IMG/VR virus record: IMGVR_UViG_3300042473_001540
Coordinates: 1-64,000 of that record
Direction: 5' to 3' (one strand)
Length of the DNA: 64,000 nucleotides
A model generated the notes under the pieces. That model was not told where the DNA came from, did no database searches, and was given only the letters and a program-made list of their open reading frames with translations. The translations under genes and the position numbers were made by a program. Positions 7,021 to 62,639 of this stretch are shown piece after piece; positions within the stretch are counted from its first letter, which is position 1, and every line of letters starts with the position of its first letter.

Positions 7021-7080
7021 TTGACGTAATTGGGCATCTAGCCTATAAATATGACACAGGAAAAGGATAGACCTTTTCCT
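7021..7080 (+). promoter_or_regulatory. Sigma70/late promoter plus leader hairpin motif
   Basis: TTGACG-17-TATAAATA, then AGGAAAAGG-ATAGA-CCTTTTCCT. Confidence 0.7.
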
Positions 7081-7107
7081 TCACATACTGAACAAGGGAG
7101 ACTTGTT

Positions 7108-8517
7108 ATGTTCAATTACGATAGCGTCATTCTTGACGTCGACAGCTACAAATTCAGCCATCCGTGGCAACTTCCCCCAAACACCACACACATTCACAGC
7201 TACGTAGAAAGTCGCGGCGGACGCTTCCCTCGCACACTGTTTTACGGGCTCCAAATGTGGCTCAAGCGTCGGCTGGTGACTCCAGTGACCATGAGCGACG
7301 TGGACGAGGCTGCTGGATTGGCAGCCGCACACATGGTGCCTTTCCATCGGGAAGGCTGGGAATACATTGTGCGTGAGCACCAGGGCCGGTTGCCAGTAGA
7401 GATTCGAGCAGTGCCCGAAGGCATGGTGATCCCCACTCACAACGTGCTAGCCACTGTGGTGAACACCGATCCCAATGTGCCCTGGCTCACTAGCTTCCTA
7501 GAGACAGCTCTACTCCGTGCTGTTTGGTACCCCACCACAGTGGCCACACTCAGCTGGCATGCCAAGCAGACCATTCGAGCTGCACTGGGGAAGAGCAGCG
7601 ACAACCCCGAAGGCGAGCTTCTGTTTCGACTGCACGACTTTGGCGCTCGTGGCGTCAGCAGCGATGAAAGCGCTCAGCTGGGTGGCAGTGCTCACCTAGT
7701 GAACTTCCGAGGCACCGACACTGTTGCAGCCCTCCTTGCAGCCCGACGCTACTACACCGAGGCCATGGCAGGGTTTAGCATTCCGGCAGCAGAGCACAGC
7801 ACCATCACCAGTTGGGGTCGCGATGGCGAAGCTGAGGCCTATGGCAACATGCTCAAGCAGTTTGCCCGGCCAGGCAGCATCCTTGCAGTGGTGAGCGACA
7901 GCTACGACATCATGAACGCGGTCAACCACATCTGGGGCGAAACACTGCGAGACCGTGTGCTAGACAGTGGGGCCACCCTTGTGATTCGTCCCGACAGCGG
8001 TGATCCAGTTGTGGTGCCAGTTGATGTGGTTGAGGCACTTGGTGAGCGGTTTGGCTACACCGTCAACAGCAAGGGCTACAAGGTGCTGAACAAGAGTGTG
8101 CGTGTGATCCAGGGCGATGGCATGAACATTGACAGCATCAAAACCCTGTATGACAACCTCACAGCACGCGGCTGGAGTGCAGAAAACGTGGCTGTGGGCA
8201 TGGGCGGCCAACTCTTGCAAGGTATTACTCGCGACACCAATCGATTTGCGATGAAAGCTTCAGCTGCCTGTATTGATGGGGAATGGCGCGAGGTATATAA
8301 GGATCCTATTACAGACAAAGGAAAAACATCCAAGAAAGGTAAAGTTACCCTTTGGCAGTCAGGTAACCAATTTCAAACAAGCGTTAACACTCCTCTACGC
8401 GGTCTTGAGAATGGTGTGGTGTGGACCGACGTTCTGCAGACAGTCTACCGGAATGGACGCCTTCTCATTGATCAATCATTCCAGGACATTAGAGATCGAT
8501 CTGAGAAAGTCTTTTAA
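7108..8517 (+). CDS. nadV: Nicotinamide phosphoribosyltransferase (NAMPT)
   Basis: DSYKFSH, LHDFGARG, SIPAAEHS, VSDSYD, IRPDSGDP, IQGDG motifs. Confidence 0.95.
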   Translation: MFNYDSVILDVDSYKFSHPWQLPPNTTHIHSYVESRGGRFPRTLFYGLQMWLKRRLVTPVTMSDVDEAAGLAAAHMVPFHREGWEYIVREHQGRLPVEIRAVPEGMVIPTHNVLATVVNTDPNVPWLTSFLETALLRAVWYPTTVATLSWHAKQTIRAALGKSSDNPEGELLFRLHDFGARGVSSDESAQLGGSAHLVNFRGTDTVAALLAARRYYTEAMAGFSIPAAEHSTITSWGRDGEAEAYGNMLKQFARPGSILAVVSDSYDIMNAVNHIWGETLRDRVLDSGATLVIRPDSGDPVVVPVDVVEALGERFGYTVNSKGYKVLNKSVRVIQGDGMNIDSIKTLYDNLTARGWSAENVAVGMGGQLLQGITRDTNRFAMKASAACIDGEWREVYKDPITDKGKTSKKGKVTLWQSGNQFQTSVNTPLRGLENGVVWTDVLQTVYRNGRLLIDQSFQDIRDRSEKVF

Positions 8518-10008: not shown

Positions 10009-10536
10009 ATGAGCGATTTAAAAACACTTACTTGGGCAAATCACAAGCTTGCCGAAAGTACTCCTTTGATGGCTGCTATGCTTTCTGGAGATATAACACC
10101 TGAATGCTACTCTGATCTAGTGTACAGCAAACACTTGTTGTATTCTGTTATTGAAAGCAGACTTGCTTTTGAGTGTGCTGACTTGCCTCGAGCAGGCTGT
10201 GCGTTCCAGGACTGGAAAGAGATGGGGTCCCACAGTCCCACTTTACCTGCCAGTTTTTTTGAATTTCACGAGAGACTGGAAACTGTGTCTGAAAGCCAAT
10301 TGTGGGCGCATGTGTATGTGCACTACCTTGCCCCGCTCTATGGTGGTCAAATCTTGAAGAAGATTTTGAGCCCTCGTTTTCCGGTAAACATGCTGAGTTT
10401 TGAAACACCCAAAGCAGCTATTGCTGAGATTCGCTACAAAACACATGCTGGTTTGGCTGAAGAGGCCAATCTCAGCTTTGAGATGACAACAAGGTACTAT
10501 GACGAACTTCATCAATCTCATCAACCAAACGGCTGA
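10009..10536 (+). CDS. Heme oxygenase
   Basis: LKTLTWANHKLAE (heme-ligand His), AHVYVHYLAPLYGGQIL. Confidence 0.85.
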   Translation: MSDLKTLTWANHKLAESTPLMAAMLSGDITPECYSDLVYSKHLLYSVIESRLAFECADLPRAGCAFQDWKEMGSHSPTLPASFFEFHERLETVSESQLWAHVYVHYLAPLYGGQILKKILSPRFPVNMLSFETPKAAIAEIRYKTHAGLAEEANLSFEMTTRYYDELHQSHQPNG

Positions 10537-11125
10537 TAAATTTGAGCAGCTGATCCAAAACAACACCACTCTCTTGACGGAGATACCAACAGAGGATTTT
10601 GGTTGGACCAATAACCGATGGTATAGCCAACAGTTTCGGCTTGCTCATGTGGAAAGATTTCAGCAACCAAAATTCAGTGTGTTGCACACTGTGATCTTTC
10701 CTCACCTGACTGATCCCAGCCCTATTTTTGGGTTTGATATCATTGCCAGTGACACCAAGGCCACAGGTTTGTTTTTTGATTTCAGTCCCACTGTTGAAAG
10801 TTATGGAATCATATCTAGTCATCTATGGAGTGAGCCACGTGAAAGACCTGAATGGGGAACAATTTTCAGCGAGCATTGGATCGCTTGCAGACCCACATAT
10901 ACGGAAGCTGAAACCATCAGCACATTGGCATGCACACTGTTGGAACAATATCTATCTCAGTTGGGAACAAAAACCACAACAGATGTACCTATGGTCATAA
11001 AGAAGCAAAATCAATACAGTTTGAACCAAAGACAAAACACTCATACTACTAGAGTTCTCATGAAGATACTGGGAGAAGAGCGTGGCCAGTATTTTGTGGA
11101 AAATATTTTATTCCCAACCATATGA
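10499..11125 (+). CDS. Ferredoxin-dependent bilin reductase (PcyA/PcyX-like)
   Basis: VLHTVIFP, PIFGFDII, FDFSP, RERPEWGTIFS, QRQNTHT; overlaps heme oxygenase. Confidence 0.85.
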   Translation: MTNFINLINQTADKFEQLIQNNTTLLTEIPTEDFGWTNNRWYSQQFRLAHVERFQQPKFSVLHTVIFPHLTDPSPIFGFDIIASDTKATGLFFDFSPTVESYGIISSHLWSEPRERPEWGTIFSEHWIACRPTYTEAETISTLACTLLEQYLSQLGTKTTTDVPMVIKKQNQYSLNQRQNTHTTRVLMKILGEERGQYFVENILFPTI

Positions 11126-11181
11126 AGAATTGACACACCCTATACTTGTAGTATCTTTCAGACTGAAGCATGGAGTAGAGT

Positions 11182-12591
11182 ATGACACCCGCTACAACGA
11201 CAGCCAAAACTATTGAAAAATCCAGTGATATGGATGCAACCAAACTGTATCTCAAGCAGGTTGCCAAAAACAAGTTGCTTACACATCAGCAGGAAATTCA
11301 ATTTAGTCAACAAATTGAAAACAGCAAGAAAAACCTGCTCTTGAATCTGTTCTCTATTCCTATGGCAGTATGGCAGTTTGATACCAAGATTCAAGGTGTA
11401 GTAAAAGGGGAAATTGACAGCCACAGCATTTTTGACATTGAAGAAACAGAACTAGCCCCTCTGCTCACAAATCTAGCAAACATTCAACAGGATATTATGC
11501 TGTTAAGCACCAGCCCCAATAGTGAACTCTGTCAACGAGTGGCTGAAACCTGTTCTTCGCTGAGTTTCAAACTCAGCTTTTACGACAGCATGGTTCAGCC
11601 CTTCAACGACATGGTGAAAGACATTATTAGCGCACAAGGAGCTTACCTGCGCTTTGCACAAAGCAAAGGAGTCTCTCGTGAGTTGTTCCTAGCCGCATAC
11701 CAAAGCATGTCACAAGACAAAAATTGGCTGCGGTTCAAAACAGTTCACCAAGCCGAAGTGGAAAAGCATGAGTCGCAACTAGCAAGTTTTGTTGCCAACA
11801 CGGGTATGCCACTTGACACACTCCTTGAAAAATGCCGCCAGATTCGGCAAGAGCAAAAAAACAAGGACGAGGCAGTGGAGATTATGCTCAAGAGCAATCT
11901 TCGACTCGTGGTGAGTGTGGCAAAGAAATACACCAACATCAGTCAAACTCCCATTCTTGATCTCATTCAAGAAGGCAACATTGGTCTCTTGAAAGCTATT
12001 GAGAAGTTTGATTGGAAGATGGGATTTCGTTTCAGCACCTACGCCACTTGGTGGATCAAGCAGTGTGTGCTGAAAGCCTTGAATGAGCATCATCGTATCA
12101 TTCGTATCCCAGCTCACATGAGCGACCTTGCCAAGAAGGTAACGCGAGCACGAGCTGAGTTTGTAAATCACAATGGTTTTGAGCCCAGTGTGCAAGAAAT
12201 TGCAGAGATGCTGGAAATTGATGTGGAAAACGTAGACAAAGTCTACAGTGTTGCGCAGGGCACAATCTCTCTGGAAACGCCAATTGGCGGTGAAGAAGAT
12301 CAAACCATTGCACATCTTATTGAAGACACTGAAGGGGTGAATGCGTTTAACCTCTTGGCTGAGGCTGACAGCGCATATGCAGTGTCAGAGGTCTTGAAAC
12401 ATCTCAGTCCCAAGGAAGAGCGTGTGATCAGGATGCGCTTTGGTATTGGTGTAAACGAACAAAGCACACTGGAAGACATTGGCAACAAATTTGGTGTCAC
12501 TCGTGAGCGTGTGCGCCAGATTGAAAGCAAAGCACTGGAAAAGCTCAAGAGTACGGAACTAGCTCAGAAGCTGCAAGAAGCTTTTACCTAA
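11182..12591 (+). CDS. rpoD: RNA polymerase sigma70 factor (RpoD-like)
   Basis: NLRLVVSVAKKY, DLIQEGNIGLLKAIEKFD, FSTYATWWI, TRERVRQIE. Confidence 0.9.
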   Translation: MTPATTTAKTIEKSSDMDATKLYLKQVAKNKLLTHQQEIQFSQQIENSKKNLLLNLFSIPMAVWQFDTKIQGVVKGEIDSHSIFDIEETELAPLLTNLANIQQDIMLLSTSPNSELCQRVAETCSSLSFKLSFYDSMVQPFNDMVKDIISAQGAYLRFAQSKGVSRELFLAAYQSMSQDKNWLRFKTVHQAEVEKHESQLASFVANTGMPLDTLLEKCRQIRQEQKNKDEAVEIMLKSNLRLVVSVAKKYTNISQTPILDLIQEGNIGLLKAIEKFDWKMGFRFSTYATWWIKQCVLKALNEHHRIIRIPAHMSDLAKKVTRARAEFVNHNGFEPSVQEIAEMLEIDVENVDKVYSVAQGTISLETPIGGEEDQTIAHLIEDTEGVNAFNLLAEADSAYAVSEVLKHLSPKEERVIRMRFGIGVNEQSTLEDIGNKFGVTRERVRQIESKALEKLKSTELAQKLQEAFT

Positions 12592-14472: not shown

Positions 14473-18564
<4,092 letters not shown>

Positions 18565-20479: not shown

Positions 20480-21208
20480 ATGCCCACACTAGGCATCACA
20501 TGTGTTGACACTAAATTTTATTCAAAAACAAAGGTTGCACTAGAGCGAACCTTGGAAACCTTAAATCATCTTGATATCAAAAAAATCTATTGGTTCAGTG
20601 ATCAGCCATTGCAGATAGACACTAGTGTAACAATACAACATATACAAATTCCTCAGATTGATAACACTCTTGAAGAGGTTTGTTTTCAGAAAGTCTACTC
20701 TGAAGTAATGTTGCGCCAGTGTCCAAAACTGGTGGAAGAAGATTTCAACCTCATAATTCACGCTGATGGCTATGCGGTGAACAAAGATGCCTGGACAGAT
20801 GAGTTCTGGAACTATGATTACACTGGCGCGGTTTGGAAAAAATGGACCTGGTGGTGTGAAAATTTAGTAGGCAATGGCGGTTTTTGCCTTCGCAGTAAAA
20901 AATTGTTATCCGCTCTAGACGCTTTGAATTTACCTACAGATGTTGATGATTATCCTGGCACAGTATTGGAAAAAGACTGGCTGGCCTCACAAGGCTATGC
21001 CAAACAACTTCGTTATATTCCAGAAGACAACATCATCTGTAGATGGTATCGACAAAAATTGGAAAAAGAGTTTGGTATAAAATTTGCACCCCTTGCGCTG
21101 GCTGATCAATTCAGTATCGAAAGAAACTTTGAAAGCCCTTGGCTGGGCAAAAGCTTGGGGTTTCATGGCAAACATGGGGTACATGAATTTTATGGGGTTG
21201 AAATCTAA
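20480..21208 (+). CDS. DUF5672-like putative glycosyltransferase
   Basis: IIHADG, YDYTGAVW, VGNGGFCLRSKK, EDNIIC, GFHG. Confidence 0.7.
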   Translation: MPTLGITCVDTKFYSKTKVALERTLETLNHLDIKKIYWFSDQPLQIDTSVTIQHIQIPQIDNTLEEVCFQKVYSEVMLRQCPKLVEEDFNLIIHADGYAVNKDAWTDEFWNYDYTGAVWKKWTWWCENLVGNGGFCLRSKKLLSALDALNLPTDVDDYPGTVLEKDWLASQGYAKQLRYIPEDNIICRWYRQKLEKEFGIKFAPLALADQFSIERNFESPWLGKSLGFHGKHGVHEFYGVEI

Positions 21209-21224
21209 AAATAATTTTTTTCCG

Positions 21225-21255
21225 TTGACATTTTTTGAACCTTCTCCTATAAATA
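21225..21255 (+). promoter_or_regulatory. Overlapping sigma70 and late promoter
   Basis: TTGACA-17-TATAAATA. Confidence 0.75.
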
Positions 21256-21313
21256 ACTTAAGGTAGCAAACAACAGTATGTTGCCCAAACACAAAAGGAC
21301 TGGAACTATAAAA

Positions 21314-21430
21314 ATGTTTTCAAAACTGATGCATAATATTTGGGAAAGGGATTGCTCATTTAGCAATGAGTATCAGCCCGCCGGTATTGTGCGCAAGCCA
21401 GTCCCAGCACCTGGAGGTGAAAAGATCTAG
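21314..21430 (+). CDS. Attenuator leader peptide (38 aa; alternative in-frame ATG at 21278)
   Basis: MFSKLMHNIWERDCSFSNEYQPAGIVRKPVPAPGGEKI*; last codons form the antiterminator 5' arm. Confidence 0.65.
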   Translation: MFSKLMHNIWERDCSFSNEYQPAGIVRKPVPAPGGEKI

Positions 21431-21465
21431 ATCAACTTTGATATAGACTTTTCAGGACCCTCCAG
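21411..21465 (+). promoter_or_regulatory. Antiterminator hairpin
   Basis: CTGGAGG/CCTCCAG, TGAAAAG/CTTTTCA, TCTA/TAGA, ATCA/TGAT nested pairings. Confidence 0.7.
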
Positions 21466-21491
21466 AGATCACAAGTCTCGGAGGGTTTTTT
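21457..21491 (+). terminator. Intrinsic terminator of attenuator
   Basis: CCCTCC(A)GAGA-loop-TCTCGGAGGG followed by T6. Confidence 0.85.
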
Positions 21492-21555
21492 GTTGGTTGG
21501 ACATTTATGCAAGGAGAGAGGAAAACGAGAAACAAATATGAAAGCACAAACAGAT

Positions 21556-21675
21556 AATCGTAGATGAAACAATTGAGCTAAACGCTCCCAAAGGTCAACT
21601 GGGTGAAAGTCCCCGGTCTAGAGCTGATAATGGTAGACAAATCCATGCAGCCAGTAATATTATTCATCTACGATT
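21556..21675 (+). ncRNA. Candidate structured RNA
   Basis: 13-bp closing stem AATCGTAGATGAA/TTCATCTACGATT enclosing small hairpins. Confidence 0.5.
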
Positions 21676-21700
21676 GTTTTAAGACAAAAGGATAGAATTT

Positions 21701-21775
21701 GGTCAGTTGGCAGAGCGATTATGCAACGGACTGCAAATCCGTTACACGGGGGTTTAAATCCCTCACTGACCTCCA
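21701..21775 (+). tRNA. tRNA-Cys(GCA)
   Basis: Cloverleaf; ACGGA-CTGCAAA-TCCGT; U73, CCA. Confidence 0.9.
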
Positions 21776-21784
21776 AATATTTGT

Positions 21785-21857
21785 GGCGCCATAGTTTAGT
21801 GGTCGAGAACACTCCGTTTTCACCGGAGAGACGGGATTTCAATTATCCCTGGCGCTA
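21785..21857 (+). tRNA. tRNA-Glu(TTC)
   Basis: CTCCG-TTTTCAC-CGGAG anticodon arm; cloverleaf. Confidence 0.85.
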
Positions 21858-21904
21858 TTCACCTATATTGACACCAAGATACATATCCTGTAGATACAAC
21901 TGAT

Positions 21905-21994
21905 GGAGCTGTGGCCGAGAGGCTTAAGGCGACGGTTTGCTAAACCGTTGTACATTGTAAAGGTGTACCGAGGGTTCGAATCCCTCCGGCTCCG
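21905..21994 (+). tRNA. tRNA-Ser(GCT)
   Basis: Long variable arm, TTCGAAT, G73. Confidence 0.92.
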
Positions 21995-22012
21995 GAAATT
22001 TTTGAGAATCAA

Positions 22013-22822
22013 ATGAACAAAGTATATGATTGTTTCAGTTTCAACGGAGAATGGGATTTACTGGAGTTAAGGCTCAATACTCTTGATCCTGTGGTTGATT
22101 ATTTCGTAATTGCTGAAAGCAATCACACACATATGGGCATACCCAAAAAATTACAGTTCAATATTCGTGACAGCAGATTAAGTAAATTCACACGCAAGAT
22201 ACGTTATATCCTGGTTTCAGATATGCCCAATCAAGATGCGTGGGGCAATGATAGATTTCAGCGGAATGCCGCTATGAGAGGCTTGTGGGACGCACAGCCA
22301 CAAGATTTGGTCATTATAAGCGACTGTGACGAACTACCAAGGCGAGAGGCAGTAGGGGTTGCTAGAGATCACAGCTATAACTTGTTTGGTTTTGAACTAG
22401 CTTGGTATTACTGTTACATTAACAATGTGAATGTTCACGGGCATCCTCCAGAAATAGCATCGGTTGGGGTTCGTTTCCAAGAACTCAAAAACCATACGCC
22501 AGATGATTACCGATGGGGTATCCGCGGAGCCAAGTATCAGGGCATTTGGATTTTCACCAACAGTGGTTGGCATTTCAGTTATCTTATGGACAAAGAAAAA
22601 ATAATTGAGAAAGTGCAGAATTTTACTCATCAAGAGTTCAACAACCCAAAAGTTTTGAGCACAATTGATCCAGTTGAAGCTGCATTGGCAGGACGCGACC
22701 TTTTGGGCAGAGACTGGATGAGTTGGAAATTGATGGAAAAAAATCAATTGGACCTACCAGCATATATTTGGAAAAATTGGACCAAATTTGAAAAACACTT
22801 TTTGTCACCAGGATTAGAATGA
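22013..22822 (+). CDS. Glycosyltransferase family 17-like protein
   Basis: VYDCFSFNGEWDLLELRL, FQRNA, ISDCDELP, GWHFSY. Confidence 0.85.
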   Translation: MNKVYDCFSFNGEWDLLELRLNTLDPVVDYFVIAESNHTHMGIPKKLQFNIRDSRLSKFTRKIRYILVSDMPNQDAWGNDRFQRNAAMRGLWDAQPQDLVIISDCDELPRREAVGVARDHSYNLFGFELAWYYCYINNVNVHGHPPEIASVGVRFQELKNHTPDDYRWGIRGAKYQGIWIFTNSGWHFSYLMDKEKIIEKVQNFTHQEFNNPKVLSTIDPVEAALAGRDLLGRDWMSWKLMEKNQLDLPAYIWKNWTKFEKHFLSPGLE

Positions 22823-23625
22823 AAAAGAAAGTTTATGACTGTTTTTGTTTCAATGGTGAATGGAGCATACTCGAGCTACGTTTGAACACACACACCCCTG
22901 TTGTGGACTATTTTGTGATTGTTGAAAGCATTTTCACACATGTGGGTCGCCCCAAGGAATTGAAATTTGATATCTCTGACCCAAGAGTTGCAGATTTTGC
23001 CCACAAAATACGATATATTTTAGTAACGGATTTTCCCAATGAAAGCGTTTGGGGTAACGAAGTCTTTCAAAGAGATGCCATTACCCGAGGATTGTGGGAT
23101 GCAGAGCCCAACAGCTTGATCTTGATATCAGATTGTGATGAAATCATTAGACCTGACTGTATACAAGCCTGTCTTGAAAACCAAGAATACAAGCTTTTTG
23201 GATTTCAACAGTTGAGTTATTTCACGTTTTTAAATAACAAAAATGAAGCAGGCAGTGGTCCTCAAGTTTGGAGTGTGGGGGTATATTTTGAAGAACTCAA
23301 AAATGCCACTCCTACAGAATATCGAATGGGCATTAGAGATGGACATTTCTCTCACATGTGGTGGTGGCACGATGCTGGATGGCATCTCAGCTATATGATG
23401 ACAAAGGAACAAATAATTGAAAAAGTCCAGAACTTTGCTCATCAAGAGTTCAACACTCCTGGCGTTTTGAGCAAGATTGATCCCATCAAACGAGCTAGGG
23501 CTGGGGAAGATATTTTGGGTAGAGAACATTGTCGATGGCAGCTTTTGCCTTTTGACTCTGTGGATTTACCCGCTTACGTGAGGCAAAATCCAGATAAGTA
23601 TCAAAAATACTTTTTAGAGCCTTAA
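22819..23625 (+). CDS. Glycosyltransferase family 17-like protein (tandem paralog)
   Basis: Same motifs as 22013..22822. Confidence 0.85.
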   Translation: MKKKVYDCFCFNGEWSILELRLNTHTPVVDYFVIVESIFTHVGRPKELKFDISDPRVADFAHKIRYILVTDFPNESVWGNEVFQRDAITRGLWDAEPNSLILISDCDEIIRPDCIQACLENQEYKLFGFQQLSYFTFLNNKNEAGSGPQVWSVGVYFEELKNATPTEYRMGIRDGHFSHMWWWHDAGWHLSYMMTKEQIIEKVQNFAHQEFNTPGVLSKIDPIKRARAGEDILGREHCRWQLLPFDSVDLPAYVRQNPDKYQKYFLEP

Positions 23626-23636
23626 CACTACACTAT

Positions 23637-23712
23637 GGGCCTATAGCTCATTTGGGAGAGCGCTTGATTTGCATTCAAGAGGCGCCTGGTTCGAACCCAG
23701 GTAGGTCCACCA
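23637..23712 (+). tRNA. tRNA-Ala(TGC)
   Basis: G3-U70, canonical cloverleaf, CCA. Confidence 0.92.
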
Positions 23713-23726
23713 ATTTAAATAAATGT

Positions 23727-23802
23727 GCCAGCATAGCACAGCGGTAGTTGCATCTGCTTTACACGCAGGATGTCGGGAGTTCAAATCTCTCTGCTGGTAC
23801 CA
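23727..23802 (+). tRNA. tRNA-Val(TAC)
   Basis: Cloverleaf, CCA. Confidence 0.9.
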
Positions 23803-23806
23803 TTAT

Positions 23807-23882
23807 GCCAACCTAGTGATCGTGGTCGACACAAACCGCTGAAGACGGTAAGAGCCTGGTTCAATCCCAGGGGTTGGCACCA
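23807..23882 (+). tRNA. tRNA-Phe(GAA)
   Basis: ACCG-CTGAAGA-CGGT, CCA. Confidence 0.85.
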
Positions 23883-24044
23883 TTTCAAAGATATACCATG
23901 CCTAAAACCCTAATTTCATCATATGCTTAGTCGTAGGGACATGTTGGCAACACAATTGCATCTCGCCACGCAACGTGTTGGGGTAAATCCTCCTCCCCCA
24001 ACCATGGGAATAAATAAGTCAAAAGTCTAATACAGAGGACTAGA

Positions 24045-24506
24045 ATGAGCTCATCTGAATTTTTGAGAAAGCTTTCTCTTTTGATAGAGAACAGTGGGTA
24101 TGATACTAGACTGTTGACTCTTCGAGAAAAGGTTGAGAGAGTCATGAAGCAACCTGACTTAGATTCGTGGAAAGAGTTAACAGAATTTGTGCTGCACTTA
24201 AACACTGACGGCTTGGATGAGCTTGAAAAAATCACTGTTGACAAAATCAAAAATGTGTGTGCCAAAGTTGAAGCCAAACCTCAATTGGCACAAAACATGA
24301 GACTGGTTTTAGATACTCATTATGGGCATTTGGCTTTTTTCACAGGCGGTAAGAAAAGTAACTTCAAGGAAAATGCGCCAACTATTGTGAGTGCTACCAC
24401 CAAAAGTGGAGAAATAGATCGTGCTGTGGCGGACCGGATTGAAGACCCTGAAGGTTATTTCAAAAAGGCGAGCAGTTACTATAGCAAAAAGCGGAAACGG
24501 AAATAA
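24045..24506 (+). CDS. Hypothetical protein
   Basis: TAAATA and GAGGA upstream. Confidence 0.65.
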   Translation: MSSSEFLRKLSLLIENSGYDTRLLTLREKVERVMKQPDLDSWKELTEFVLHLNTDGLDELEKITVDKIKNVCAKVEAKPQLAQNMRLVLDTHYGHLAFFTGGKKSNFKENAPTIVSATTKSGEIDRAVADRIEDPEGYFKKASSYYSKKRKRK

Positions 24507-24591
24507 CGCTTTTTGGAGTTGACAGTGTAAGTTTGCACTGTAAATTTACGATGTTGAGGACCGGTAGTAATTGGTCCTCAACAAAAACTAT

Positions 24592-24670
24592 GGATCACAT
24601 GTACTCACTGGTGTGTACAACGGTCTTTTAAACCGTCCTCTGCGGGGTTCGATTCCCCGGTGATCCTCCA
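24592..24670 (+). tRNA. tRNA-Lys(TTT)
   Basis: ACGGT-CTTTTAA-ACCGT, CCA. Confidence 0.85.
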
Positions 24671-24678
24671 ATACTTTT

Positions 24679-24754
24679 GGACCGTTAACTCAGTGGTAAG
24701 AGTGCCATCCTCTTAAGTTGGAAGTCCTGGGTTCAAATCCCAGACGGTCCTCCA
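24679..24754 (+). tRNA. tRNA-Lys(CTT)
   Basis: Cloverleaf, CTCTTAA loop, CCA. Confidence 0.88.
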
Positions 24755-25024: not shown

Positions 25025-25133
25025 TTGCCATCGAGGTTGGAACAGCCTCCCAACACACCATGAGAATGGTAACTAGCCGGCAGCAATCACCTAGCTGGTG
25101 AAGAAATCCGGAAGTGGCATCCGGCGATGGCGA
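25025..25133 (+). ncRNA. Candidate multibranch RNA
   Basis: TTGCCATCG/CGATGGCGA closing stem with four internal hairpins. Confidence 0.45.
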
Positions 25134-25869: not shown

Positions 25870-26355
25870 ATGAAAATAAGTGAAATCACCTTACCAAAAA
25901 CGCGATGGGATGCACATGGTATTCTTGTAAAAGCTGGATATAAGAGATTGGGCAGCGGAGCATTTGCTTCTGTTTATGAAAAACCTGGCCGCCCATATGT
26001 TATAAAGTTGTTCGGTAGTGAAGACAGTGCATATCGTGCATTTATTGATCTAGCAAGAAAACATCCAAACAAACATTTTCCAAAGTTTTTTGGTAAATTG
26101 ATTCGCTTTCCTGATTTTTATGGTATAAGAATGGAAAAACTCTCACCATATAAAGGAAACTCCAGGTATATCCGAGATTACATCTTGTTTGGAGAAGACG
26201 AGACAGAAGAAATCATGCATCGGCCAGAATTAGCAGAAGCATGCGATTTGATCACGACTTTGCTGGGAAAATACAATCTCGATATCAAGAATGATAATAT
26301 TATGCAGAGAGGAAATACCCTTGTGTTTATTGACCCAGTTTGGGGCAAAGAATAA
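25870..26355 (+). CDS. Minimal protein kinase-like protein
   Basis: LGSGAFASVY, VIK, DIKNDNIM, FIDP. Confidence 0.7.
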   Translation: MKISEITLPKTRWDAHGILVKAGYKRLGSGAFASVYEKPGRPYVIKLFGSEDSAYRAFIDLARKHPNKHFPKFFGKLIRFPDFYGIRMEKLSPYKGNSRYIRDYILFGEDETEEIMHRPELAEACDLITTLLGKYNLDIKNDNIMQRGNTLVFIDPVWGKE

Positions 26356-26379
26356 AAAGCAGACGCCAAGAGATAATAT

Positions 26380-26449
26380 CCCAGGTTGAACCAGCGTTCC
26401 ACCGGCCTTCATACGGCTGAGTGAAAAGGTGCAACTCCTTTGCCTGGGA
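26380..26449 (+). tRNA. tRNA with CAT anticodon (Met-type), atypical
   Basis: CGGCC-TTCATAC-GGCTG; short D arm; T loop TGCAACT. Confidence 0.65.
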
Positions 26450-26537
26450 CTAAAAATATAAGTTGACTGACCCCTCAACGCACTTATAATCTGTGTATTG
26501 ATAGAGAGCGGTGAGGTAGAGACAAAAATAGAGATTA

Positions 26538-26614
26538 TCCCGGACGGGCGCAAGGTGTGCCAGCAGATTGTTAATCTGTTCATCAGGAAAGTTCGATTCT
26601 TTCTCCGGGAGCCA
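26538..26614 (+). tRNA. tRNA-Asn(GTT)
   Basis: GCAGA-TTGTTAA-TCTGT; G73; CCA. Confidence 0.85.
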
Positions 26615-26622
26615 AAAACAAG

Positions 26623-26765
26623 ATAGGACTGACGATGGTCCTCCCTCAAGGGTTCGAGTACATGGTTGGGTTAGCGTCCAACTTGCAGCAATGTGCGAAA
26701 TCACAGCGTCCTCTGGAGCTGGGTGTAATGCCCAGATAGGCAGCCGGTTAAGCCGAACAAGCCGG
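26623..26765 (+). ncRNA. Unknown structured RNA, copy 1
   Basis: Diverged repeat of 26898-27042 with compensatory stem changes. Confidence 0.7.
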
Positions 26766-26897
26766 TATATCATACGCAGACACGGCGCTGCATGGTTGCT
26801 ACAAGGAACATTTTGAGAGAATGGTGTGTAGGGATAGACAAGCGCGACGCCCAGGGTTGGCCAACTTATGAGACGTGAACCGTTTCCGCACCAGCAA

Positions 26898-27042
26898 ATA
26901 GGACTGCCCATGGTCCTCCTGAAAAGGTTTGAGAACATGCCTGGAGTTTATCGCCTAGGTAGTAACAATGTTTGAAATTTACAGAGGTCTCTGGTGCTAC
27001 GTGTAACTCGTAGATAGTCAGCCGGTTAAGACGAAAAGCCGG
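26898..27042 (+). ncRNA. Unknown structured RNA, copy 2
   Basis: See copy 1. Confidence 0.7.
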
Positions 27043-27126
27043 AGTATTTGTTGTTACCTACTCTTTACTGGGGTGTCATTCAAGTCTAGAGACGTGTGCA
27101 GCCAGCGTCAAACTATAAATATCCTT

Positions 27127-27489
27127 ATGTTGATATTTGAAGTTTTGGCGCCAGCGAACACAAGACTGGAATTGGGAAAACAACTACAAAGTATTTTAGA
27201 TGCTGTGCGTGGTCCAGAAAACAGCCGGGTCAAGTTAACCAAACATCTTCTAGATAAAATGTTACAATACAATATTCGTGCCAGTAATGTTGCAGCTATG
27301 GTAAAAAAAGCTTTTCGATTCCACAATCGCCCGTTGGCTGAACTGGGAACAAACAACAGAATCATATTGCGGAAAACAGATAAAACTGGCTTGGTGGTAG
27401 TCAAAAACACACACGGTGATTATGTGCTGGCTACTATTGACCCCAATTTGTATAACGTTAAAAATCCCAGTCCAGAACTGCGTGTGTAG
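27127..27489 (+). CDS. Hypothetical protein
   Basis: TATAAATA immediately upstream. Confidence 0.6.
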   Translation: MLIFEVLAPANTRLELGKQLQSILDAVRGPENSRVKLTKHLLDKMLQYNIRASNVAAMVKKAFRFHNRPLAELGTNNRIILRKTDKTGLVVVKNTHGDYVLATIDPNLYNVKNPSPELRV

Positions 27490-27538
27490 TTGACAGTTTC
27501 CTTCTCTCATATATAATTGAAAATAGATAGATATTTGG

Positions 27539-27657
27539 CCTGCTTTATATGCAGTCCTACAGCAGGTATTGAGTGCTCTGCCCAAAAGCGTTGCACCGTA
27601 CACAAATTCAAATGAATTTGTGGGTTTTGGGCAGGAAGGGGAGTGTGCAACCTCCCT
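27539..27657 (+). ncRNA. Candidate pseudoknotted leader RNA
   Basis: Nested stems plus GTTGCAC/GTGCAAC loop-loop complement, downstream of TTGACA...TATAAT. Confidence 0.45.
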
Positions 27658-27690
27658 GAGAGATTTTTGTTTGAGTGGAAGGAACTCAAA

Positions 27691-27885
27691 ATGACACGAC
27701 TGTTACCAATTGTTGCTTTGTTGGGCCTATTGATTGGCTGTGCACCCGCACCCTACTATTCCGATCACCGATCTGGCTACAGCACATACCCGCGACACTA
27801 TGGTCCTCCAACACCAGTGTGTCATTACACTAGCTATTATGACAGATATCAGCGTCGCCACGTCACTGTCCGACGCTGTCACTAG
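27691..27885 (+). CDS. Small lipoprotein
   Basis: Signal peptide with LLIGC lipobox. Confidence 0.65.
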   Translation: MTRLLPIVALLGLLIGCAPAPYYSDHRSGYSTYPRHYGPPTPVCHYTSYYDRYQRRHVTVRRCH

Positions 27886-27890
27886 ATTTA

Positions 27891-27966
27891 GGGCCATGTT
27901 GGACACCCCACTGGAAAACCCACAGTGGACGATGACGGGGTCTGGGATCATCTCCCAGGTGGTCCA
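27891..27966 (+). ncRNA. tRNA-like RNA with Ala identity (no D or normal anticodon arm)
   Basis: GGGCCAT/GTGGTCC-A with G3-U70; T arm CTGGG-ATCATCT-CCCAG. Confidence 0.45.
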
Positions 27967-27988
27967 CTAAGTTTTCATTTACGAGTTA

Positions 27989-28063
27989 CTGGGTGTAGCT
28001 CAGAAGCAGAGCGCTGGTTTTGGGAACCAGAGGCCAGGATTGCGAAATTCCTCACCCGGACCA
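27989..28063 (+). tRNA. tRNA-Pro(TGG)
   Basis: CTGGT-TTTGGGA-ACCAG; T loop TGCGAAA; CCA. Confidence 0.85.
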
Positions 28064-28075
28064 CTTTTTACCTAT

Positions 28076-28164
28076 GAGCAGCTTCCCCCACACCGGTCTG
28101 TAAAACCGACGCCTTTCAAAACAGTGGGGAATTGAGGCGAGGGGAGAGTTACCCTGGTTGCTCA
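28076..28164 (+). tRNA. Atypical tRNA-Tyr(GTA) lacking a D hairpin
   Basis: GAGCAGC/GTTGCTC-A; CGGT-CTGTAAA-ACCG; long variable arm. Confidence 0.55.
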
Positions 28165-28305
28165 AAACTCTAAATAGCCTTGTAGATAAGGTATCTACAA
28201 ACATTTGAAAAATCAAAGGAAACCTAAAATGCCAAGTGGCAGTATACAGCCGTCAATTTAGGGTTCTCAAGTCTCCTAAGTTGACGGCAATAGTAGGAGA
28301 CAGCT

Positions 28306-28623
28306 ATGCGTAAATTTATCAAGAATAGGTTTGAGATTTTGGCTGAGTGGATCAGCGCCAATTTGGGTCACCCATATGCGTTTTTGAGCGCAGCAGGTTC
28401 AGTTGTATTATGGGCCTTGCTGGGGCCAGTGTTTGGATTCAGTGACACATGGCAGCTGGTAATCAATACCAGCACAACCATTGTTACGTTTTTGATGGTG
28501 TTCCTATTGCAGAACACTGGCAATAGAGGCATCAAAGAAATGGACGAGCGTATCAAAAGTCTGGAGCGGCAAAACAATCAATTGCTGACGGAGATACGTG
28601 CAATGGTTCACACCAAAGTTTAA
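28306..28623 (+). CDS. Low-affinity iron permease family protein
   Basis: GPVFGFSDTWQLVINTSTTIVTFLMVFLLQNT. Confidence 0.85.
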   Translation: MRKFIKNRFEILAEWISANLGHPYAFLSAAGSVVLWALLGPVFGFSDTWQLVINTSTTIVTFLMVFLLQNTGNRGIKEMDERIKSLERQNNQLLTEIRAMVHTKV

Positions 28624-28713
28624 GGAAGTGTGGCAGAGCGGCTCTAATGCACTGGTCTTGAAAACCAGCGAAGGCAGGAATGTCTTCCGTGGGTTCGAAT
28701 CCCACCACTTCCG
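28624..28713 (+). tRNA. tRNA-Ser(TGA)
   Basis: Long variable arm, TTCGAAT, G73. Confidence 0.92.
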
Positions 28714-28752
28714 TTCGTTGACACAGCCTAGTGGACGCCCATATAATTGAGA

Positions 28753-32316: not shown

Positions 32317-32922
32317 TTACCATCTTGCATTATCCTCAAATCCAGCATCTTCTAGTTCTTTTTGACAATCAAACATGGCACGTTTGCCTTGTCCTGCGTA
32401 TTTGTTCAAGATTGTTTCAACAGTCGTGTGATTCATTGCTGACCGCAACGAGATACTTTTGGCTGCCAAACAACGGAGCAGTGGAAGAGTAGGCGTGTAA
32501 GGTATAGCCAAGTAATTGAGCTCTGAAGGCATACCTTGGAGTGAGGTTAATGGGTTGAGGTGACAACTAAAAAGATCACCAACACTGCTGGGAGCACCTT
32601 CCAGTGAAGTCAGTTGGTTGTTGAAGCATACGAAACTTCCAACCACATTCTTGGGTGCAGCTTTAAGTGAAATAAGTTGGTTACTTGAGCCTAAGAAACT
32701 TCCACCAACACTCTCTGGCGCCCCGTCCAGTGTGGTTAGTTGGTTGTAATCGCACTGGAAGTGTCCAAGAACACTCTTGAAACGCACAGGGAACTGGGGT
32801 AATTGTCTTTTAAGTATAACATTACCCTGGCAAGTGATCAACCCCTCAGGATCTATTGTGACTTGGCCTGTTGTTTTGAAATTAGCTTTCAACAAAGCCA
32901 TTACTTCTTTTTTGTCTACCAT
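32317..32922 (-). CDS. LRR-like cassette protein 9
   Basis: LRR-like repeats plus conserved C-terminal block. Confidence 0.85.
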   Translation of the reverse strand: MVDKKEVMALLKANFKTTGQVTIDPEGLITCQGNVILKRQLPQFPVRFKSVLGHFQCDYNQLTTLDGAPESVGGSFLGSSNQLISLKAAPKNVVGSFVCFNNQLTSLEGAPSSVGDLFSCHLNPLTSLQGMPSELNYLAIPYTPTLPLLRCLAAKSISLRSAMNHTTVETILNKYAGQGKRAMFDCQKELEDAGFEDNARW

Positions 32923-33668
32923 CTTGCATTCCCTTCAAATCCAGCATCTTCCAGTTCTTTTTGGCAGTCAAACATGGCACGTTTGCCTTGACCCATATAC
33001 TTTTGCAGAATAGCCCGCACCTCGTGTGGCCATCCCATACCCGACCACAGTTTTTTAGCATTTAAACAACGCAAGAGCGGCAGAGTGGGGCTGTAGTCAA
33101 TCCATAAAACCCTTACTTCAGTAGGCATTCCTTCAAGTGACTCTAGCTGATTACCCCATGCTCTCAACTCGCCAGTGATGGTTTTTGGTGCACCGTGTAG
33201 TGAGACTAGTTTGTTTTCCATGCAAAACAAATCATGCACTTTCTCAGGAACATGTTCCAGTGATGAGAGTTGATTTGTCATACAAGAGAAATTGGCACCA
33301 ACTGATTTGGGACAGTGTTCAAGGCTTTCTATGTTGTTATTATCGCATTTGAAATCTCCGCCCACATGTTGAGGCGAACCCAACAAACTGGTGAGTTGGT
33401 TGTGGCCACACTTGAAATCTCTACCTACCCAAGAGGGTGCGCCTTCTAGACTCACCAGATCGGTATGCTGTACAGCAAAATCGTAGCGTATTTTTCCAAA
33501 CCTTACCCGCAAGGTTTTTATACCTGGCTTACCATCAAGGTAAGATTTCTCCTTGCTCTTGACACTGCCTGTGCAGGATATCAATCCTGTGTTGGGATCA
33601 ACAGAGAGTTTACCTGTGTGAGAGTAATATTTGTCAAAAGTTTTTTTGATCCCGGCTAGATCTACCAT
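32916..33668 (-). CDS. LRR-like cassette protein 8
   Basis: Same; 7-nt ATGGTAG start/stop overlap. Confidence 0.85.
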   Translation of the reverse strand: MVDLAGIKKTFDKYYSHTGKLSVDPNTGLISCTGSVKSKEKSYLDGKPGIKTLRVRFGKIRYDFAVQHTDLVSLEGAPSWVGRDFKCGHNQLTSLLGSPQHVGGDFKCDNNNIESLEHCPKSVGANFSCMTNQLSSLEHVPEKVHDLFCMENKLVSLHGAPKTITGELRAWGNQLESLEGMPTEVRVLWIDYSPTLPLLRCLNAKKLWSGMGWPHEVRAILQKYMGQGKRAMFDCQKELEDAGFEGNARW

Positions 33669-34279
33669 CGTGCATTTCCTTCAAATCCAGAGTCTTCCAA
33701 ATCTTTTTGGCAGTCAAACATGGCAGCTTTGCCTTGACCTGCATATTTGTTCATGATTTCTTGAACCTTCTGGGGTGGCTCCGATTCATCAACCCTATGC
33801 ATGAATACAATTTTTTTGGCAACCAATGCACGTAGCAAAGGCAAAGTGGGCGAATATTGTAACACTAGTCGCCCTAAACCTTCTTGCGGTATGCCTTCAA
33901 GACTTTCAAGTGGATTGCCCACACAACTCAAAGATCCAAGAACTTTTTTGGGTGCACCTTGCAAGCTCTTGAGCTGGTTGAACCCACATAAGTAGTGTTC
34001 GCCAACAGCATCAGGACCGCCTTCAAGAGTTTGTAAATTGTTCTCAGTACAACGAAATTCATTGTAGACATATTTGGGAGATCCTTGAAGGCTTGTGAGC
34101 CCCATGCCCCCCACATCAAATCCTTCCACTTCATAAAAGCCAACTGGCAACTTCTTAACATGCAACATAAGCGTTACGTAACCTTTTGTGCTTATTGTTC
34201 CATCAGAATTGATTACAATGCTTTCATTACATTGAAAATAATCATCAAAAGTTTTTTTGATGTTATCAACGTCTACCAT
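33662..34279 (-). CDS. LRR-like cassette protein 7
   Basis: Same. Confidence 0.85.
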   Translation of the reverse strand: MVDVDNIKKTFDDYFQCNESIVINSDGTISTKGYVTLMLHVKKLPVGFYEVEGFDVGGMGLTSLQGSPKYVYNEFRCTENNLQTLEGGPDAVGEHYLCGFNQLKSLQGAPKKVLGSLSCVGNPLESLEGIPQEGLGRLVLQYSPTLPLLRALVAKKIVFMHRVDESEPPQKVQEIMNKYAGQGKAAMFDCQKDLEDSGFEGNARW

Positions 34280-34911
34280 TTTGCATGATCCTCAAATCCA
34301 GCGTCTTCCAAATCTTTTTGGCAATCAAACATGGCACGTTTGCCTTGGCCAGCATATTTGTTCAAAATTGTCTGCACTTTTCCCTTCTCCACAGTGTGAG
34401 TGTCGTCAGCAGGCTCTAAAAATATATGCCTTGCTGCCAAGGTACGTAAGAGAGGCAAATGTGGTAGATACGGTAACCAAGCTGCATTTTCCACTTTCAA
34501 CGGAAATCCATCCAAGCTTTTCAACGGATTACCAATGCAATTGAAATTATTGGGTATCTGGACAGGTGCCCCCTTCAAATCAACAAGTTGATTATGGTCA
34601 CAGTAGTAGTTCCAACCTACAATTTCTGGCCCCCCACTAAGGCTTTTGAGCATGTTACGTGAACAGTCAAAACTCACGCCCACTTCAGGGGGACAGCCTT
34701 CCAAGGTTACTAGTGCGTTCTCATCTAACGATAGATTTTCAGTTACAGCTTTGAAGGCAACTGGCAGTTTTTCAAAACGTGTATAGTGGAGATTCAACAA
34801 TTGAATATCGCCATTTACTGTTACCAGTCCATCTGATGAAACTTTTGCACTGTTGTAGTCAAAGCTGAAATGGTCTTTCAATAACTGCAAGATTTCTCGT
34901 TTGTTTACCAT
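34273..34911 (-). CDS. LRR-like cassette protein 6
   Basis: Same. Confidence 0.85.
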   Translation of the reverse strand: MVNKREILQLLKDHFSFDYNSAKVSSDGLVTVNGDIQLLNLHYTRFEKLPVAFKAVTENLSLDENALVTLEGCPPEVGVSFDCSRNMLKSLSGGPEIVGWNYYCDHNQLVDLKGAPVQIPNNFNCIGNPLKSLDGFPLKVENAAWLPYLPHLPLLRTLAARHIFLEPADDTHTVEKGKVQTILNKYAGQGKRAMFDCQKDLEDAGFEDHAKW

Positions 34912-47192: not shown

Positions 47193-47266
47193 GGCCCCAT
47201 AAGACAAAGGTAGTCAGCTGGACTCTAAATCCAGTGGTGTGAGTTCAAATCTCACTGGTGCCACCA
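47193..47266 (+). tRNA. Amber suppressor tRNA (CTA)
   Basis: CTGGA-CTCTAAA-TCCAG; TTCAAAT; ACCA; own TTGACG-17-TATACA promoter. Confidence 0.85.

Positions 47267-60395: not shown

Positions 60396-62638
<2,243 letters not shown>

Positions 62639-62639
<1 letters not shown>

Follow-up and report, generated by a model that had tools for sequence, protein, structure and literature searches.

Short leader ORFs that control transcription by attenuation are known from the amino-acid biosynthetic operons of enterobacteria (trpL, hisL, pheL, leuL, thrL and ilvL). In these systems, a promoter-proximal ORF precedes an intrinsic terminator whose 5' arm can instead pair with an upstream strand, the antiterminator, and the stop codon is placed so that a terminating ribosome removes this antiterminator. 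The terminator is thermodynamically stronger than the antiterminator, and the ribosome-binding site of the trp leader can be paired away. A second system is the whiB7 uORF attenuator of mycobacteria, where efficient uORF translation gives a Rho-independent terminator and stalling gives an antiterminator (PMC10274678). The whiB7 uORF varies in length and sequence between species, is enriched in alanine (25-40%), encodes 19 of the 20 amino acids in M. smegmatis, and is described as a sensor of general translation stress that is activated by depletion of many amino acids, tRNAs and tRNA synthetases (PMC10274678). Third, in antibiotic-responsive attenuators of Firmicutes such as the vmlR leader of Bacillus subtilis, stalling on a short uORF switches a terminator off in response to slowed translation rather than to one amino acid (PMC9226507). 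Finally, the tRNA region of phage T4 also encodes stable small RNAs of unknown function (species 1 and 2), apparently co-transcribed with tRNAs, although no leader-peptide attenuator is known to have been described upstream of them.

Here, we analysed a locus in an uncultivated jumbo cyanophage (IMG/VR record IMGVR_UViG_3300042473_001540, positions 1 to 64,000; this 64,000-nt stretch is referred to as the window). A preliminary description had proposed that a leader ORF sampling almost every amino acid controls the phage tRNA region through an attenuator, and that no equivalent had been described. The promoter, 38-codon ORF, long hairpin and intrinsic terminator it reported are present where it placed them. 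Its interpretation is only partly supported: the attenuator architecture is conserved, whereas the sampling of every amino acid by design is weakly supported, control of the tRNA cluster as such is not, and whiB7 is a described equivalent.

Like the enterobacterial leaders, the phage locus has a promoter-proximal ORF, competing terminator and antiterminator strands, a stop codon in the corresponding position, a stronger terminator fold and a ribosome-binding site that can be paired away. It differs from them in lacking a run of codons for one amino acid and a convincing 1:2 hairpin, in its longer leader (38-40 codons), and in its position in a phage before genes that encode RNAs rather than biosynthetic enzymes. 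Compared with whiB7, it shares the proposed logic and an ORF of mixed composition that varies between relatives, but no residue is enriched and the downstream genes encode phage RNAs instead of a bacterial transcription factor; no sequence relationship is expected. The Firmicutes uORFs are much shorter, respond to particular drug-ribosome complexes and control resistance factors. The RNAs downstream of the phage leader fit the description of the T4 species, but no sequence or Rfam relationship was found.

Anatomy of the leader region

The features of the locus, all on the plus strand, are as follows.

21225-21255 (+), promoter: TTGACA (21225-21230), a 17-nt spacer and TATAAATA (21248-21255)
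21262-21285 (+), predicted hairpin at the start of the transcript
21295-21299 (+), AAGGA, a ribosome-binding-site-like motif 14 nt before the ATG
21297-21303 (+), 5' strand (GGACUGG) of a predicted long-range helix that covers the ribosome-binding site
21314-21430 (+), leader ORF, 38 codons plus TAG (21428-21430)
21353-21372 (+), predicted hairpin inside the ORF (codons 14-20)
21398-21404 (+), 3' strand (CCAGUCC) of the long-range helix
21411-21417 (+), antiterminator 5' strand, CUGGAGG (codons for Pro-Gly-Gly)
21418-21454 (+), inner hairpin holding the leader stop codon in its 5' arm
21459-21465 (+), CCUCCAG, shared by the antiterminator (3' strand) and the terminator (5' arm)
21458-21491 (+), intrinsic terminator: 5' arm 21458-21468, loop 21469-21475, 3' arm 21476-21485, T6 21486-21491
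21553-21679 (+), RNA-1, a conserved 127-nt structured RNA with four helices
21701-21775 (+), tRNA-Cys (GCA), found by ARAGORN and Rfam
21784-21858 (+), tRNA-Glu (UUC), found by ARAGORN and Rfam
21868-21896 (+), next promoter-like site (TTGACA-17-TAGATA), the likely end of the unit that would depend on read-through

The promoter, the ORF and the site at 21868-21896 were read directly from the sequence. TATAAATA occurs 8 times in the window against 1.5 expected. A scan confirmed further promoter-like sites at 24519 and 26463, as had been suggested in the preliminary description. The consensus terminator scan missed the leader terminator because of its bulged A.

CTGGAGG (21411-21417) can pair with CCTCCAG (21459-21465), which extends the inner hairpin across a 4-nt bulge. 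The preliminary description regarded this long hairpin and the terminator as mutually exclusive, which requires one qualification: only the 7-bp base helix competes with the terminator, whereas the inner hairpin and the terminator coexist in the minimum-energy fold (-36.0 kcal/mol). RNA ending in the terminator loop folds into the long hairpin (-24.8 kcal/mol).

The first 26 codons of the ORF encode 19 residue types, with only Thr missing. The chance of this diversity, which had been named beforehand as a check, is 7e-5 against 26-residue windows of the phage's own proteins, 7e-4 for independent draws from its amino-acid composition, and 0.004 against the fairer null of dinucleotide shuffles of the ORF that stay open. 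The in-frame ATG at 21278, proposed to supply the missing Thr, exists but was rejected as the start because it is not conserved, and the related locus L011 (related loci are referred to with L and a number) has an in-frame stop just upstream of its leader ATG region. The proposed number of about 27 tRNAs was not confirmed, as ARAGORN found 18 in the window and Rfam one more.

Conservation of the module in related jumbo cyanophages

The same module occurs in nine sequence variants from six diverged lineages of uncultivated jumbo cyanophages, whose flanking exonuclease proteins are 48-85% identical to that of the window. The promoter pattern TTGACA-17-TATAAATA matches upstream of the leader in eight variants and, by reading, in L033. 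AAGGA lies 10-15 nt upstream of the leader ATG in the same eight variants, whereas L033 has only AGGAA, 16 nt upstream. This spacing is longer than is typical for this phage, whose genes often carry AAGGA 7-10 nt upstream of their start. The 5' hairpin is present in the window, L011 and L005 but absent from the short 5' leaders of L030 and L031. Each of the five lineages folded pairs its ribosome-binding site or start codon with codons about 28-33, using different sequences. At the ORF offset of the hairpin at codons 14-20, L005 has a different hairpin, and the one substitution here among close variants falls in the loop.

The ORF is open in all six lineages at 38-40 codons. The chance of staying open is 0.07-0.23 per lineage, with a product of 9e-5, and the other two frames carry 1-4 stops everywhere. 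In contrast, pN/pS of the ORF is 0.75-1.16, with one close pair at 1.82, against 0.17-0.42 for the neighbouring exonuclease gene, and peptides of different lineages match at only 6-9 positions. So the frame is selected and the protein is not.

GGAGG, CCUCC and GGAGG(G) are essentially invariant in the nine variants, while the rest of the ORF diverges to about 50% nucleotide identity. The flanking pairs differ but stay complementary: CU:AG in the window, UC:GA in L027, U:A in L031 and G:C in L033. The inner hairpin is present in all lineages with unrelated sequences, and substitutions among close variants fall in its loop and bulge. In all nine variants, the nascent RNA folds into the antiterminator (-20 to -33 kcal/mol), whereas the complete RNA folds into the inner hairpin plus terminator (-32 to -41 kcal/mol); the terminator stem energy is -17 to -23 kcal/mol and a T run follows. 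On the nine-sequence alignment, 90.5% of cells in the antiterminator base helix are paired, but formal covariation is weak because the core is invariant: only two pairs show a compensatory change, both in L027, and the shuffle controls are not exceeded. The stop codon always lies in the 5' arm of the hairpin, 7-10 nt after GGAGG, and the terminator starts 26-33 nt after the stop. In E. coli, more than 27 nt is the distance at which a ribosome parked on the stop no longer blocks terminator folding (PMC4824070).

The six lineages encode 19, 19, 19, 19, 16 and 20 residue types, and different residues are missing in different lineages. There is no codon run. Neutral open frames already give 17.0 +/- 1.3 types; the excess has P = 0.005 with the window and P = 0.02 without it, and P = 0.13 for the first 26 codons alone without the window. 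This supports the pan-amino-acid idea only weakly.

The partner that most consistently follows the terminator is a structured RNA and not the tRNA cluster. RNA-1, whose presence had been noted in the preliminary description, shows compensatory changes in all four helices over seven sequences, and each locus that carries it has exactly one copy, always after the leader terminator. In L025 and L033, a second, unrelated structured RNA (RNA-2) takes its place. In L031 no tRNA follows for 2.7 kb, and L028 starts its tRNA array with no leader at all. At most RNA-1, tRNA-Cys and tRNA-Glu lie before the next promoter-like site, and L005 has TTGACA-17-TATAGT at the same place, after tRNA-Glu. No conserved sigma-70-type promoter lies between the terminator and RNA-1. 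RNA-1 therefore depends on read-through, unless a phage-specific promoter was missed.

A proposed ribosome-dependent attenuator and its alternatives

We consider a ribosome-dependent transcription attenuator the best explanation, with moderate confidence. In this view, host-type RNA polymerase starts at the TTGACA-17-TATAAATA promoter and transcribes a 38-codon ORF for which the act of translation matters and the product does not. As the RNA emerges, the inner hairpin would form and CUGGAGG would pair with CCUCCAG at its base, withholding the 5' arm of the terminator. A ribosome that follows closely and reaches the stop codon would unwind and cover CUGGAGG, so that CCUCC is free to pair with the downstream GGAGGG and transcription ends at the T run. 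If the ribosome is slow, stalled anywhere in roughly the first 29 codons, or absent, the antiterminator would persist and the polymerase would read into RNA-1 and tRNA-Cys/Glu. As the leader has no run of one codon and uses 16-20 residue types, it would report general elongation capacity, i.e., shortage of many different charged tRNAs or translation inhibition. Our analysis establishes the sequence anatomy, its conservation, the neutral evolution of the peptide in a frame that is kept open, and the alternative folds; translation of the ORF, conditional termination and its response to the rate of translation, the direction of the switch, the signal and any pause that couples polymerase and ribosome are inferred from these.

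Several points weigh against this model. The spacing between AAGGA and the ATG (10-15 nt) is longer than the 7-10 nt common in this phage, formal covariation in the antiterminator base helix is weak, and a promoter, about 230 structured nucleotides and a terminator are also the anatomy of a stand-alone small RNA gene. The terminator fold is about 11 kcal/mol more stable than the antiterminator fold, and in the window a 4-bp toehold (GAGA:UCUC) is left free, so strand displacement might defeat the antiterminator. For an upstream 1:2 hairpin, only weak candidates were seen (CCAG:CUGG in the window and UCCAC:GUGGA in L031), and the hairpin at codons 14-20 could act as a polymerase pause site, although this role is inference only. 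Without translation, the default would be read-through.

If the model is correct, it would give phages a direct way to couple transcription of RNA genes to the state of the host's translation apparatus. Phage tRNA genes are now discussed as countermeasures against host defences that cut tRNAs (PMC10264068, PMC11555353), while how phages regulate them is largely unknown. As far as our full-text literature searches show, this compact element (about 270 nt) would be the first conserved leader-peptide attenuator reported in a phage upstream of non-coding genes. The placement of RNA-1 and RNA-2, two unclassified structured RNAs, behind a putative translation sensor suggests a role in translation or tRNA biology.

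A more far-reaching but unlikely possibility is that the leader is a built-in translation meter that samples nearly every charged tRNA, with all 20 amino acids in one lineage and 19 in four others. Depletion of almost any tRNA, by starvation of the cyanobacterial host or by a tRNA-cleaving defence nuclease, would then stall the pioneer ribosome and switch on a new structured RNA and the first phage tRNAs as a countermeasure. The conserved GGAGG, 7-10 nt before the stop codon, would in addition bind the anti-Shine-Dalgarno end of the terminating ribosome, so that ribosome and terminator arm compete for the same five bases.

The alternative that survives best, although we consider it unlikely, is a stand-alone small RNA gene, in which the roughly 230-nt transcript is itself the product and possibly acts by base pairing. 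In this case, the terminator would be constitutive, the long hairpin only a folding intermediate, and RNA-1 and the tRNAs would be made by leak-through or from an unrecognised phage promoter. A strong promoter and a strong terminator bracket a highly structured RNA (z = -5.05), there is no protein-level constraint, substitutions among close variants avoid stems, and attenuator-derived small RNAs that act in trans are known, for example rnTrpL (PMC6614838). However, this does not explain why one frame stays open in six lineages with ATG and AAGGA kept while the other frames carry stops, why the stop codon always sits in the hairpin arm, at a fixed distance from GGAGG and 26-33 nt before the terminator, or why a structured RNA without a conserved promoter of its own always follows.

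A leader that senses a ligand, protein or tRNA (a riboswitch, a T-box-like element or the target of an RNA-binding antiterminator) is very unlikely. In every lineage folded, a closing long-range helix with nested helices directly precedes the antiterminator strand, resembling an aptamer followed by an expression platform, and binding to the long irregular hairpin over 21297-21404 would decide between the two folds, with the ORF incidental. However, the presumed aptamer has no conserved core, as the window and L005 are 50% identical across it, in short blocks only. In 20500-24500, no Rfam family other than tRNA-related ones matches at E <= 1, T-box included, and the 4-nt antiterminator bulge varies (GGAC, AGAC, GAAC) instead of carrying a T-box-type sequence. 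Retention of the open frame is also left unexplained.

An attenuator of opposite sign is very unlikely as well. Ribosomes near a terminator are known to suppress it (PMC4824070), and in pyrBI a closely following ribosome prevents terminator folding, so that active translation gives read-through. Here, the ORF does not run into the terminator but ends 26-33 nt before its stem in every lineage, at or beyond the distance at which that suppression disappears, and a ribosome at the stop would instead destroy the structure that competes with the terminator. Least likely is an ordinary gene for a 38-residue protein with its own terminator, in which the peptide is the functional product and the alternative hairpin has no regulatory role: phages encode many small early proteins and a gene caller annotated the ORF in one metagenome, but pN/pS is about 1, lineages match at only 6-9 of 38-40 positions, there is no Pfam match, and only nucleotides that belong to RNA structure are conserved.

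Database searches and further observations

A DNA search of GenBank phages found only tRNA matches, and a protein search with the exonuclease found only 33-37% identical jumbo phages of Pseudomonas, Vibrio and Escherichia; there is no cultured close relative. IMG/VR contained only four identical copies of the window phage, and more distant IMG/VR relatives (L018 and L019) have no tRNAs or module near the exonuclease gene. Species-representative genomes gave no match to the RNA-1 core. RNA-1 has no match in Rfam 15; the best hit on 21540-21700 is ctRNA_pGA1 on the opposite strand, at 13.6 bits and E = 1.8. Resemblances of RNA-1 to the RNase P P4 strand, SRP RNA and the hammerhead ribozyme were not borne out, as Rfam gave no hit and the U of the AGUCC-like block is A in L005.

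No similar leader modules were seen before other tRNA sub-clusters of the window, in 23600-24700 or 26350-28750. The presence of a CUA-anticodon tRNA and the TAG stop of the window's leader raised the possibility of TAG recoding, which was rejected because TAG ends 18 of 54 long ORFs and other lineages end the leader with TAA. A search with a 50-residue version of the leader alignment found one cluster, which gave L023. Contigs of sample 3300059473 carry a 78%-identical DUF5672 protein (P0002) and the exonuclease (P0129); in the contig of P0002, an as yet unexplained gene is called 122 nt downstream and runs 59 codons to the contig end.

Anatomy of the leader and the phage that carries it

The region of interest lies directly after a DUF5672-family gene (20480-21208). 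In order, it contains the following features:
21225-21255, a promoter consisting of TTGACA, a 17-nt spacer and TATAAATA
21262-21285, a 5' hairpin
21295-21299, an AAGGA motif
21314-21430, an ORF of 38 codons with stop codon TAG
a long hairpin
21458-21485, an intrinsic terminator
21486-21491, the T6 run of the terminator

The coordinates and pairings in the preliminary description are correct. CUGGAGG (21411-21417) can pair with CCUCCAG (21459-21465), which is part of the 5' arm of the terminator. However, an inner hairpin (21418-21454) is compatible with both states, and only the 7-bp base helix competes with the terminator. RNA ending in the terminator loop folds into the long hairpin (-24.8 kcal/mol), whereas the complete RNA folds into the inner hairpin plus the terminator (-36.0 kcal/mol). 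The whole leader is far more structured than shuffled controls (z = -5.05). The preliminary description had also counted about 27 tRNAs, but ARAGORN finds 18 tRNA genes in the window and Rfam one more.

The -10 box of the leader promoter, TATAAATA, is used in all lineages. It occurs eight times in the window against 1.5 expected, at 7044, 9538 (-), 12597, 20430 (-), 21248, 27114, 41135 and 53841 (-). It is the same sequence as the T4 late-promoter consensus and may be a phage promoter element.

The window is identical to four IMG/VR contigs of up to 310 kb. It encodes a NAMPT-type phosphoribosyltransferase, heme oxygenase, a ferredoxin-dependent bilin reductase and a full-length sigma-70 factor (7051-8517 and 10009-12591, +). 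These genes point to a jumbo cyanophage, the cyanobacterial host being inferred from gene content alone. No cultured relative is close. Ten tandem ORFs of about 200-270 residues, most with near-identical upstream sequences, lie at 32317-38221 (-). The two that were tested have no Pfam match, and together the ten look like a paralogue array.

Conservation of the open frame and the RNA architecture

To find relatives of the module, we used the neighbouring DUF5672 and RNase T-like exonuclease genes, the core of a structured RNA downstream of the terminator (RNA-1) and the leader peptide. This recovered nine sequence variants in six lineages, where L numbers denote the contigs of related phages: the window lineage with its close variants L011, L023 and L025, and the lineages of L030, L005, L027, L031 and L033. 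The exonuclease proteins of these contigs are 48-85% identical to that of the window. Some relatives lack the module: L028 starts its tRNA array directly from a promoter, and L018, L019, L034 and L035 have nothing comparable near the exonuclease gene.

The block at 21335-21694 of the window is 95-100% identical to L011, whereas the flanking genes are about 78% identical. This suggests recent exchange of the leader and RNA-1 module between phages. The gene next to the leader is a hotspot for mobile elements. In L005 (8138-10016) the DUF5672 gene is truncated, with a resolvase gene and a 439-residue ORF directly upstream of it, and in L023 (2034-2999) and L033 (9291-10109) a NUMOD3 homing-endonuclease-like gene occupies the position. 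Two large proteins with collagen triple-helix repeats are encoded at 14473-18555 (-) and 60402-62639 (+), the first of which is conserved upstream of the module in the relatives.

All lineages have an ATG-started frame of 38-40 codons that ends inside the hairpin. Dinucleotide shuffles stay open with a probability of 0.07-0.23 per lineage, and the product over five lineages is 9e-5. Frames 2 and 3 contain 1-4 stops in every lineage. In contrast, the protein is not conserved. The pN/pS within the leader is 0.75-1.16, with one close pair at 1.82, while the adjacent exonuclease gene gives 0.17-0.42. The window and L005 are 50% identical in an ungapped nucleotide alignment, with no third-position excess of change, and peptides of different lineages match at only 6-9 of 38-40 positions. 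A frame that is preserved while its product drifts is what one expects of a regulatory leader ORF, and argues against a functional small protein. The ATG at 21278, which the preliminary description had offered as an alternative start, is not conserved. AAGGA lies 10-15 nt before the leader ATG in eight variants, somewhat further than the 7-10 nt seen before many genes of this phage.

In every variant, the nascent RNA folds with GGAGG paired to CCUCC at the base of an inner hairpin, and the complete RNA folds into that inner hairpin plus the terminator. The inner hairpins of the lineages share no sequence, yet all contain the stop codon of the leader in their 5' arm. GGAGG ends 10 nt before the stop codon (7 nt in L027), and the terminator stem begins 26-33 nt after the stop. 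GGAGG, CCUCC and the GGAG(G)G of the terminator are essentially invariant, although the surrounding ORF is about 50% diverged. The pairs flanking GGAGG:CCUCC differ between lineages but remain complementary (CU:AG, UC:GA, U:A and G:C). On a nine-sequence alignment, 90.5% of cells in the base helix pair and two pairs show compensatory change, but because the core never varies the shuffle controls are not exceeded. This helix is therefore supported by conservation and context more than by covariation statistics. Among the close variants, substitutions fall in the predicted loops and bulges. Upstream, each of the five lineages folded pairs its ribosome-binding site or start codon with codons about 28-33, using different sequences, which would restrict initiation to the time before this segment is transcribed.

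Proposed attenuation mechanism and residue diversity of the leader

The feature described at the outset is real and conserved, and we consider with moderate confidence that it is most likely a ribosome-dependent attenuator. In this view, a ribosome that reaches the stop codon unwinds and covers GGAGG and the 5' arm of the hairpin, so that CCUCC is free for the terminator. The terminator lies at or just beyond the distance at which a ribosome parked on a stop codon ceases to hinder terminator folding, which is more than 27 nt in E. coli (PMC4824070). A ribosome stalled within roughly the first 29 codons, or no ribosome at all, would leave the antiterminator intact and the polymerase would read through. 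As in the trp attenuator, the terminator is more stable than the antiterminator. Translation of the ORF, the sign of the switch and the way in which ribosome and polymerase are synchronised are inferred and have not been demonstrated, although a hairpin at codons 14-20 could be a pause site. A further inference concerns spacing: as GGAGG sits where a Shine-Dalgarno sequence would sit relative to the P site of a terminating ribosome, the CCUCC end of the ribosome itself may compete with the terminator arm for it. The main alternative, a stand-alone structured small RNA, remains possible but appears unlikely.

The preliminary interpretation is only partly upheld. Its striking claim of a leader built to sample all amino acids is weakly supported. 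The 19 residue types in 26 codons of the window are rare against protein-based nulls (7e-5 and 7e-4). However, the right null is a neutrally evolving open frame. Dinucleotide shuffles that remain open give 14.7 +/- 1.4 types in 26 codons, against which the 19 of the window has P = 0.004, and 17.0 +/- 1.3 types in the whole leader, where P(19 or more) is 0.12-0.13.

Table. Residue types encoded by the whole leader (lineage; number of types; missing residues).
window; 19; Thr
L030; 19; Gln
L005; 19; Leu
L027; 19; Ala
L031; 16; Ala, Cys, Asp, Leu
L033; 20; none

Table. Combined excess of residue types over the open-frame null (measure; with the window; without the window).
Whole leader; P = 0.005; P = 0.02
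All but the last nine codons; P = 0.005; P = 0.06
First 26 codons; P = 0.009; P = 0.13

The window is the most extreme member of the family for the first 26 codons, which is presumably why it attracted attention. The data therefore hint at selection for diverse codons but do not establish it. No lineage needs a special design to behave as a broad sensor, because any mixed leader would respond to shortage of whichever residues it contains. Exactly this has been shown for the whiB7 uORF (PMC10274678), so that the general principle is already known.

Mechanistically, the element would be a leader-peptide attenuator, but it lacks the run of regulatory codons that defines the amino-acid-operon type, and it would control RNA genes. 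Its closest functional analogue is the whiB7 uORF attenuator and, more loosely, antibiotic-sensing uORF attenuators such as the vmlR leader. It is not a T-box and not a pyrBI-type coupling attenuator. Literature searches found no leader-peptide attenuator in front of phage tRNA or small-RNA genes, although the absence of a report in the literature searched is not proof that none exists. What is new is the setting, a jumbo cyanophage, and the putatively regulated genes, namely an unclassified structured RNA and tRNAs.

Structured RNAs and tRNAs downstream of the terminator

Sixty nucleotides after the terminator comes RNA-1 (21553-21679, +), a conserved four-helix RNA of about 127 nt. Every helix shows compensatory changes over seven sequences, and the RNA has an invariant core and no match in Rfam 15. 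A covariance model finds exactly one copy in each locus that carries it, always just after the leader terminator. In L025 (2925-3200) and L033 (about 10520-10800), a different conserved stretch of about 270 nt, RNA-2, takes its place between the leader terminator and tRNA-Cys. RNA-2 also has no Rfam match and does not occur in the window.

The tRNAs follow at varying distance: tRNA-Cys and tRNA-Glu follow in the window, whereas no tRNA follows for 2.7 kb in L031. We found no conserved sigma-70-type promoter between the terminator and RNA-1. A promoter-like site follows tRNA-Glu at 21868 and is conserved in L005. The unit that depends on read-through would therefore be RNA-1 plus one or two tRNAs, not the tRNA cluster. 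The other sub-clusters examined have their own promoter-like sites and show no comparable leader.

The tRNA region also contains a match to the skipping-rope RNA family (RF02924) at 25026-25132 (+), with 44.5 bits against a gathering score of 36.7. A tRNA with anticodon CUA, the amber-suppressor type, is encoded at 47193-47266 (+) and is labelled Pyl by ARAGORN. TAG still ends 18 of 54 long ORFs, so there is no sign of recoding, and while the leader of the window ends in TAG, those of L011 and L005 end in TAA. Finally, a conserved non-coding stretch (around ...CCCCCACACCGGTCTGT...) that was not called as a tRNA recurs near tRNA genes in both the window (28080-28150) and L031 (13012-13120).
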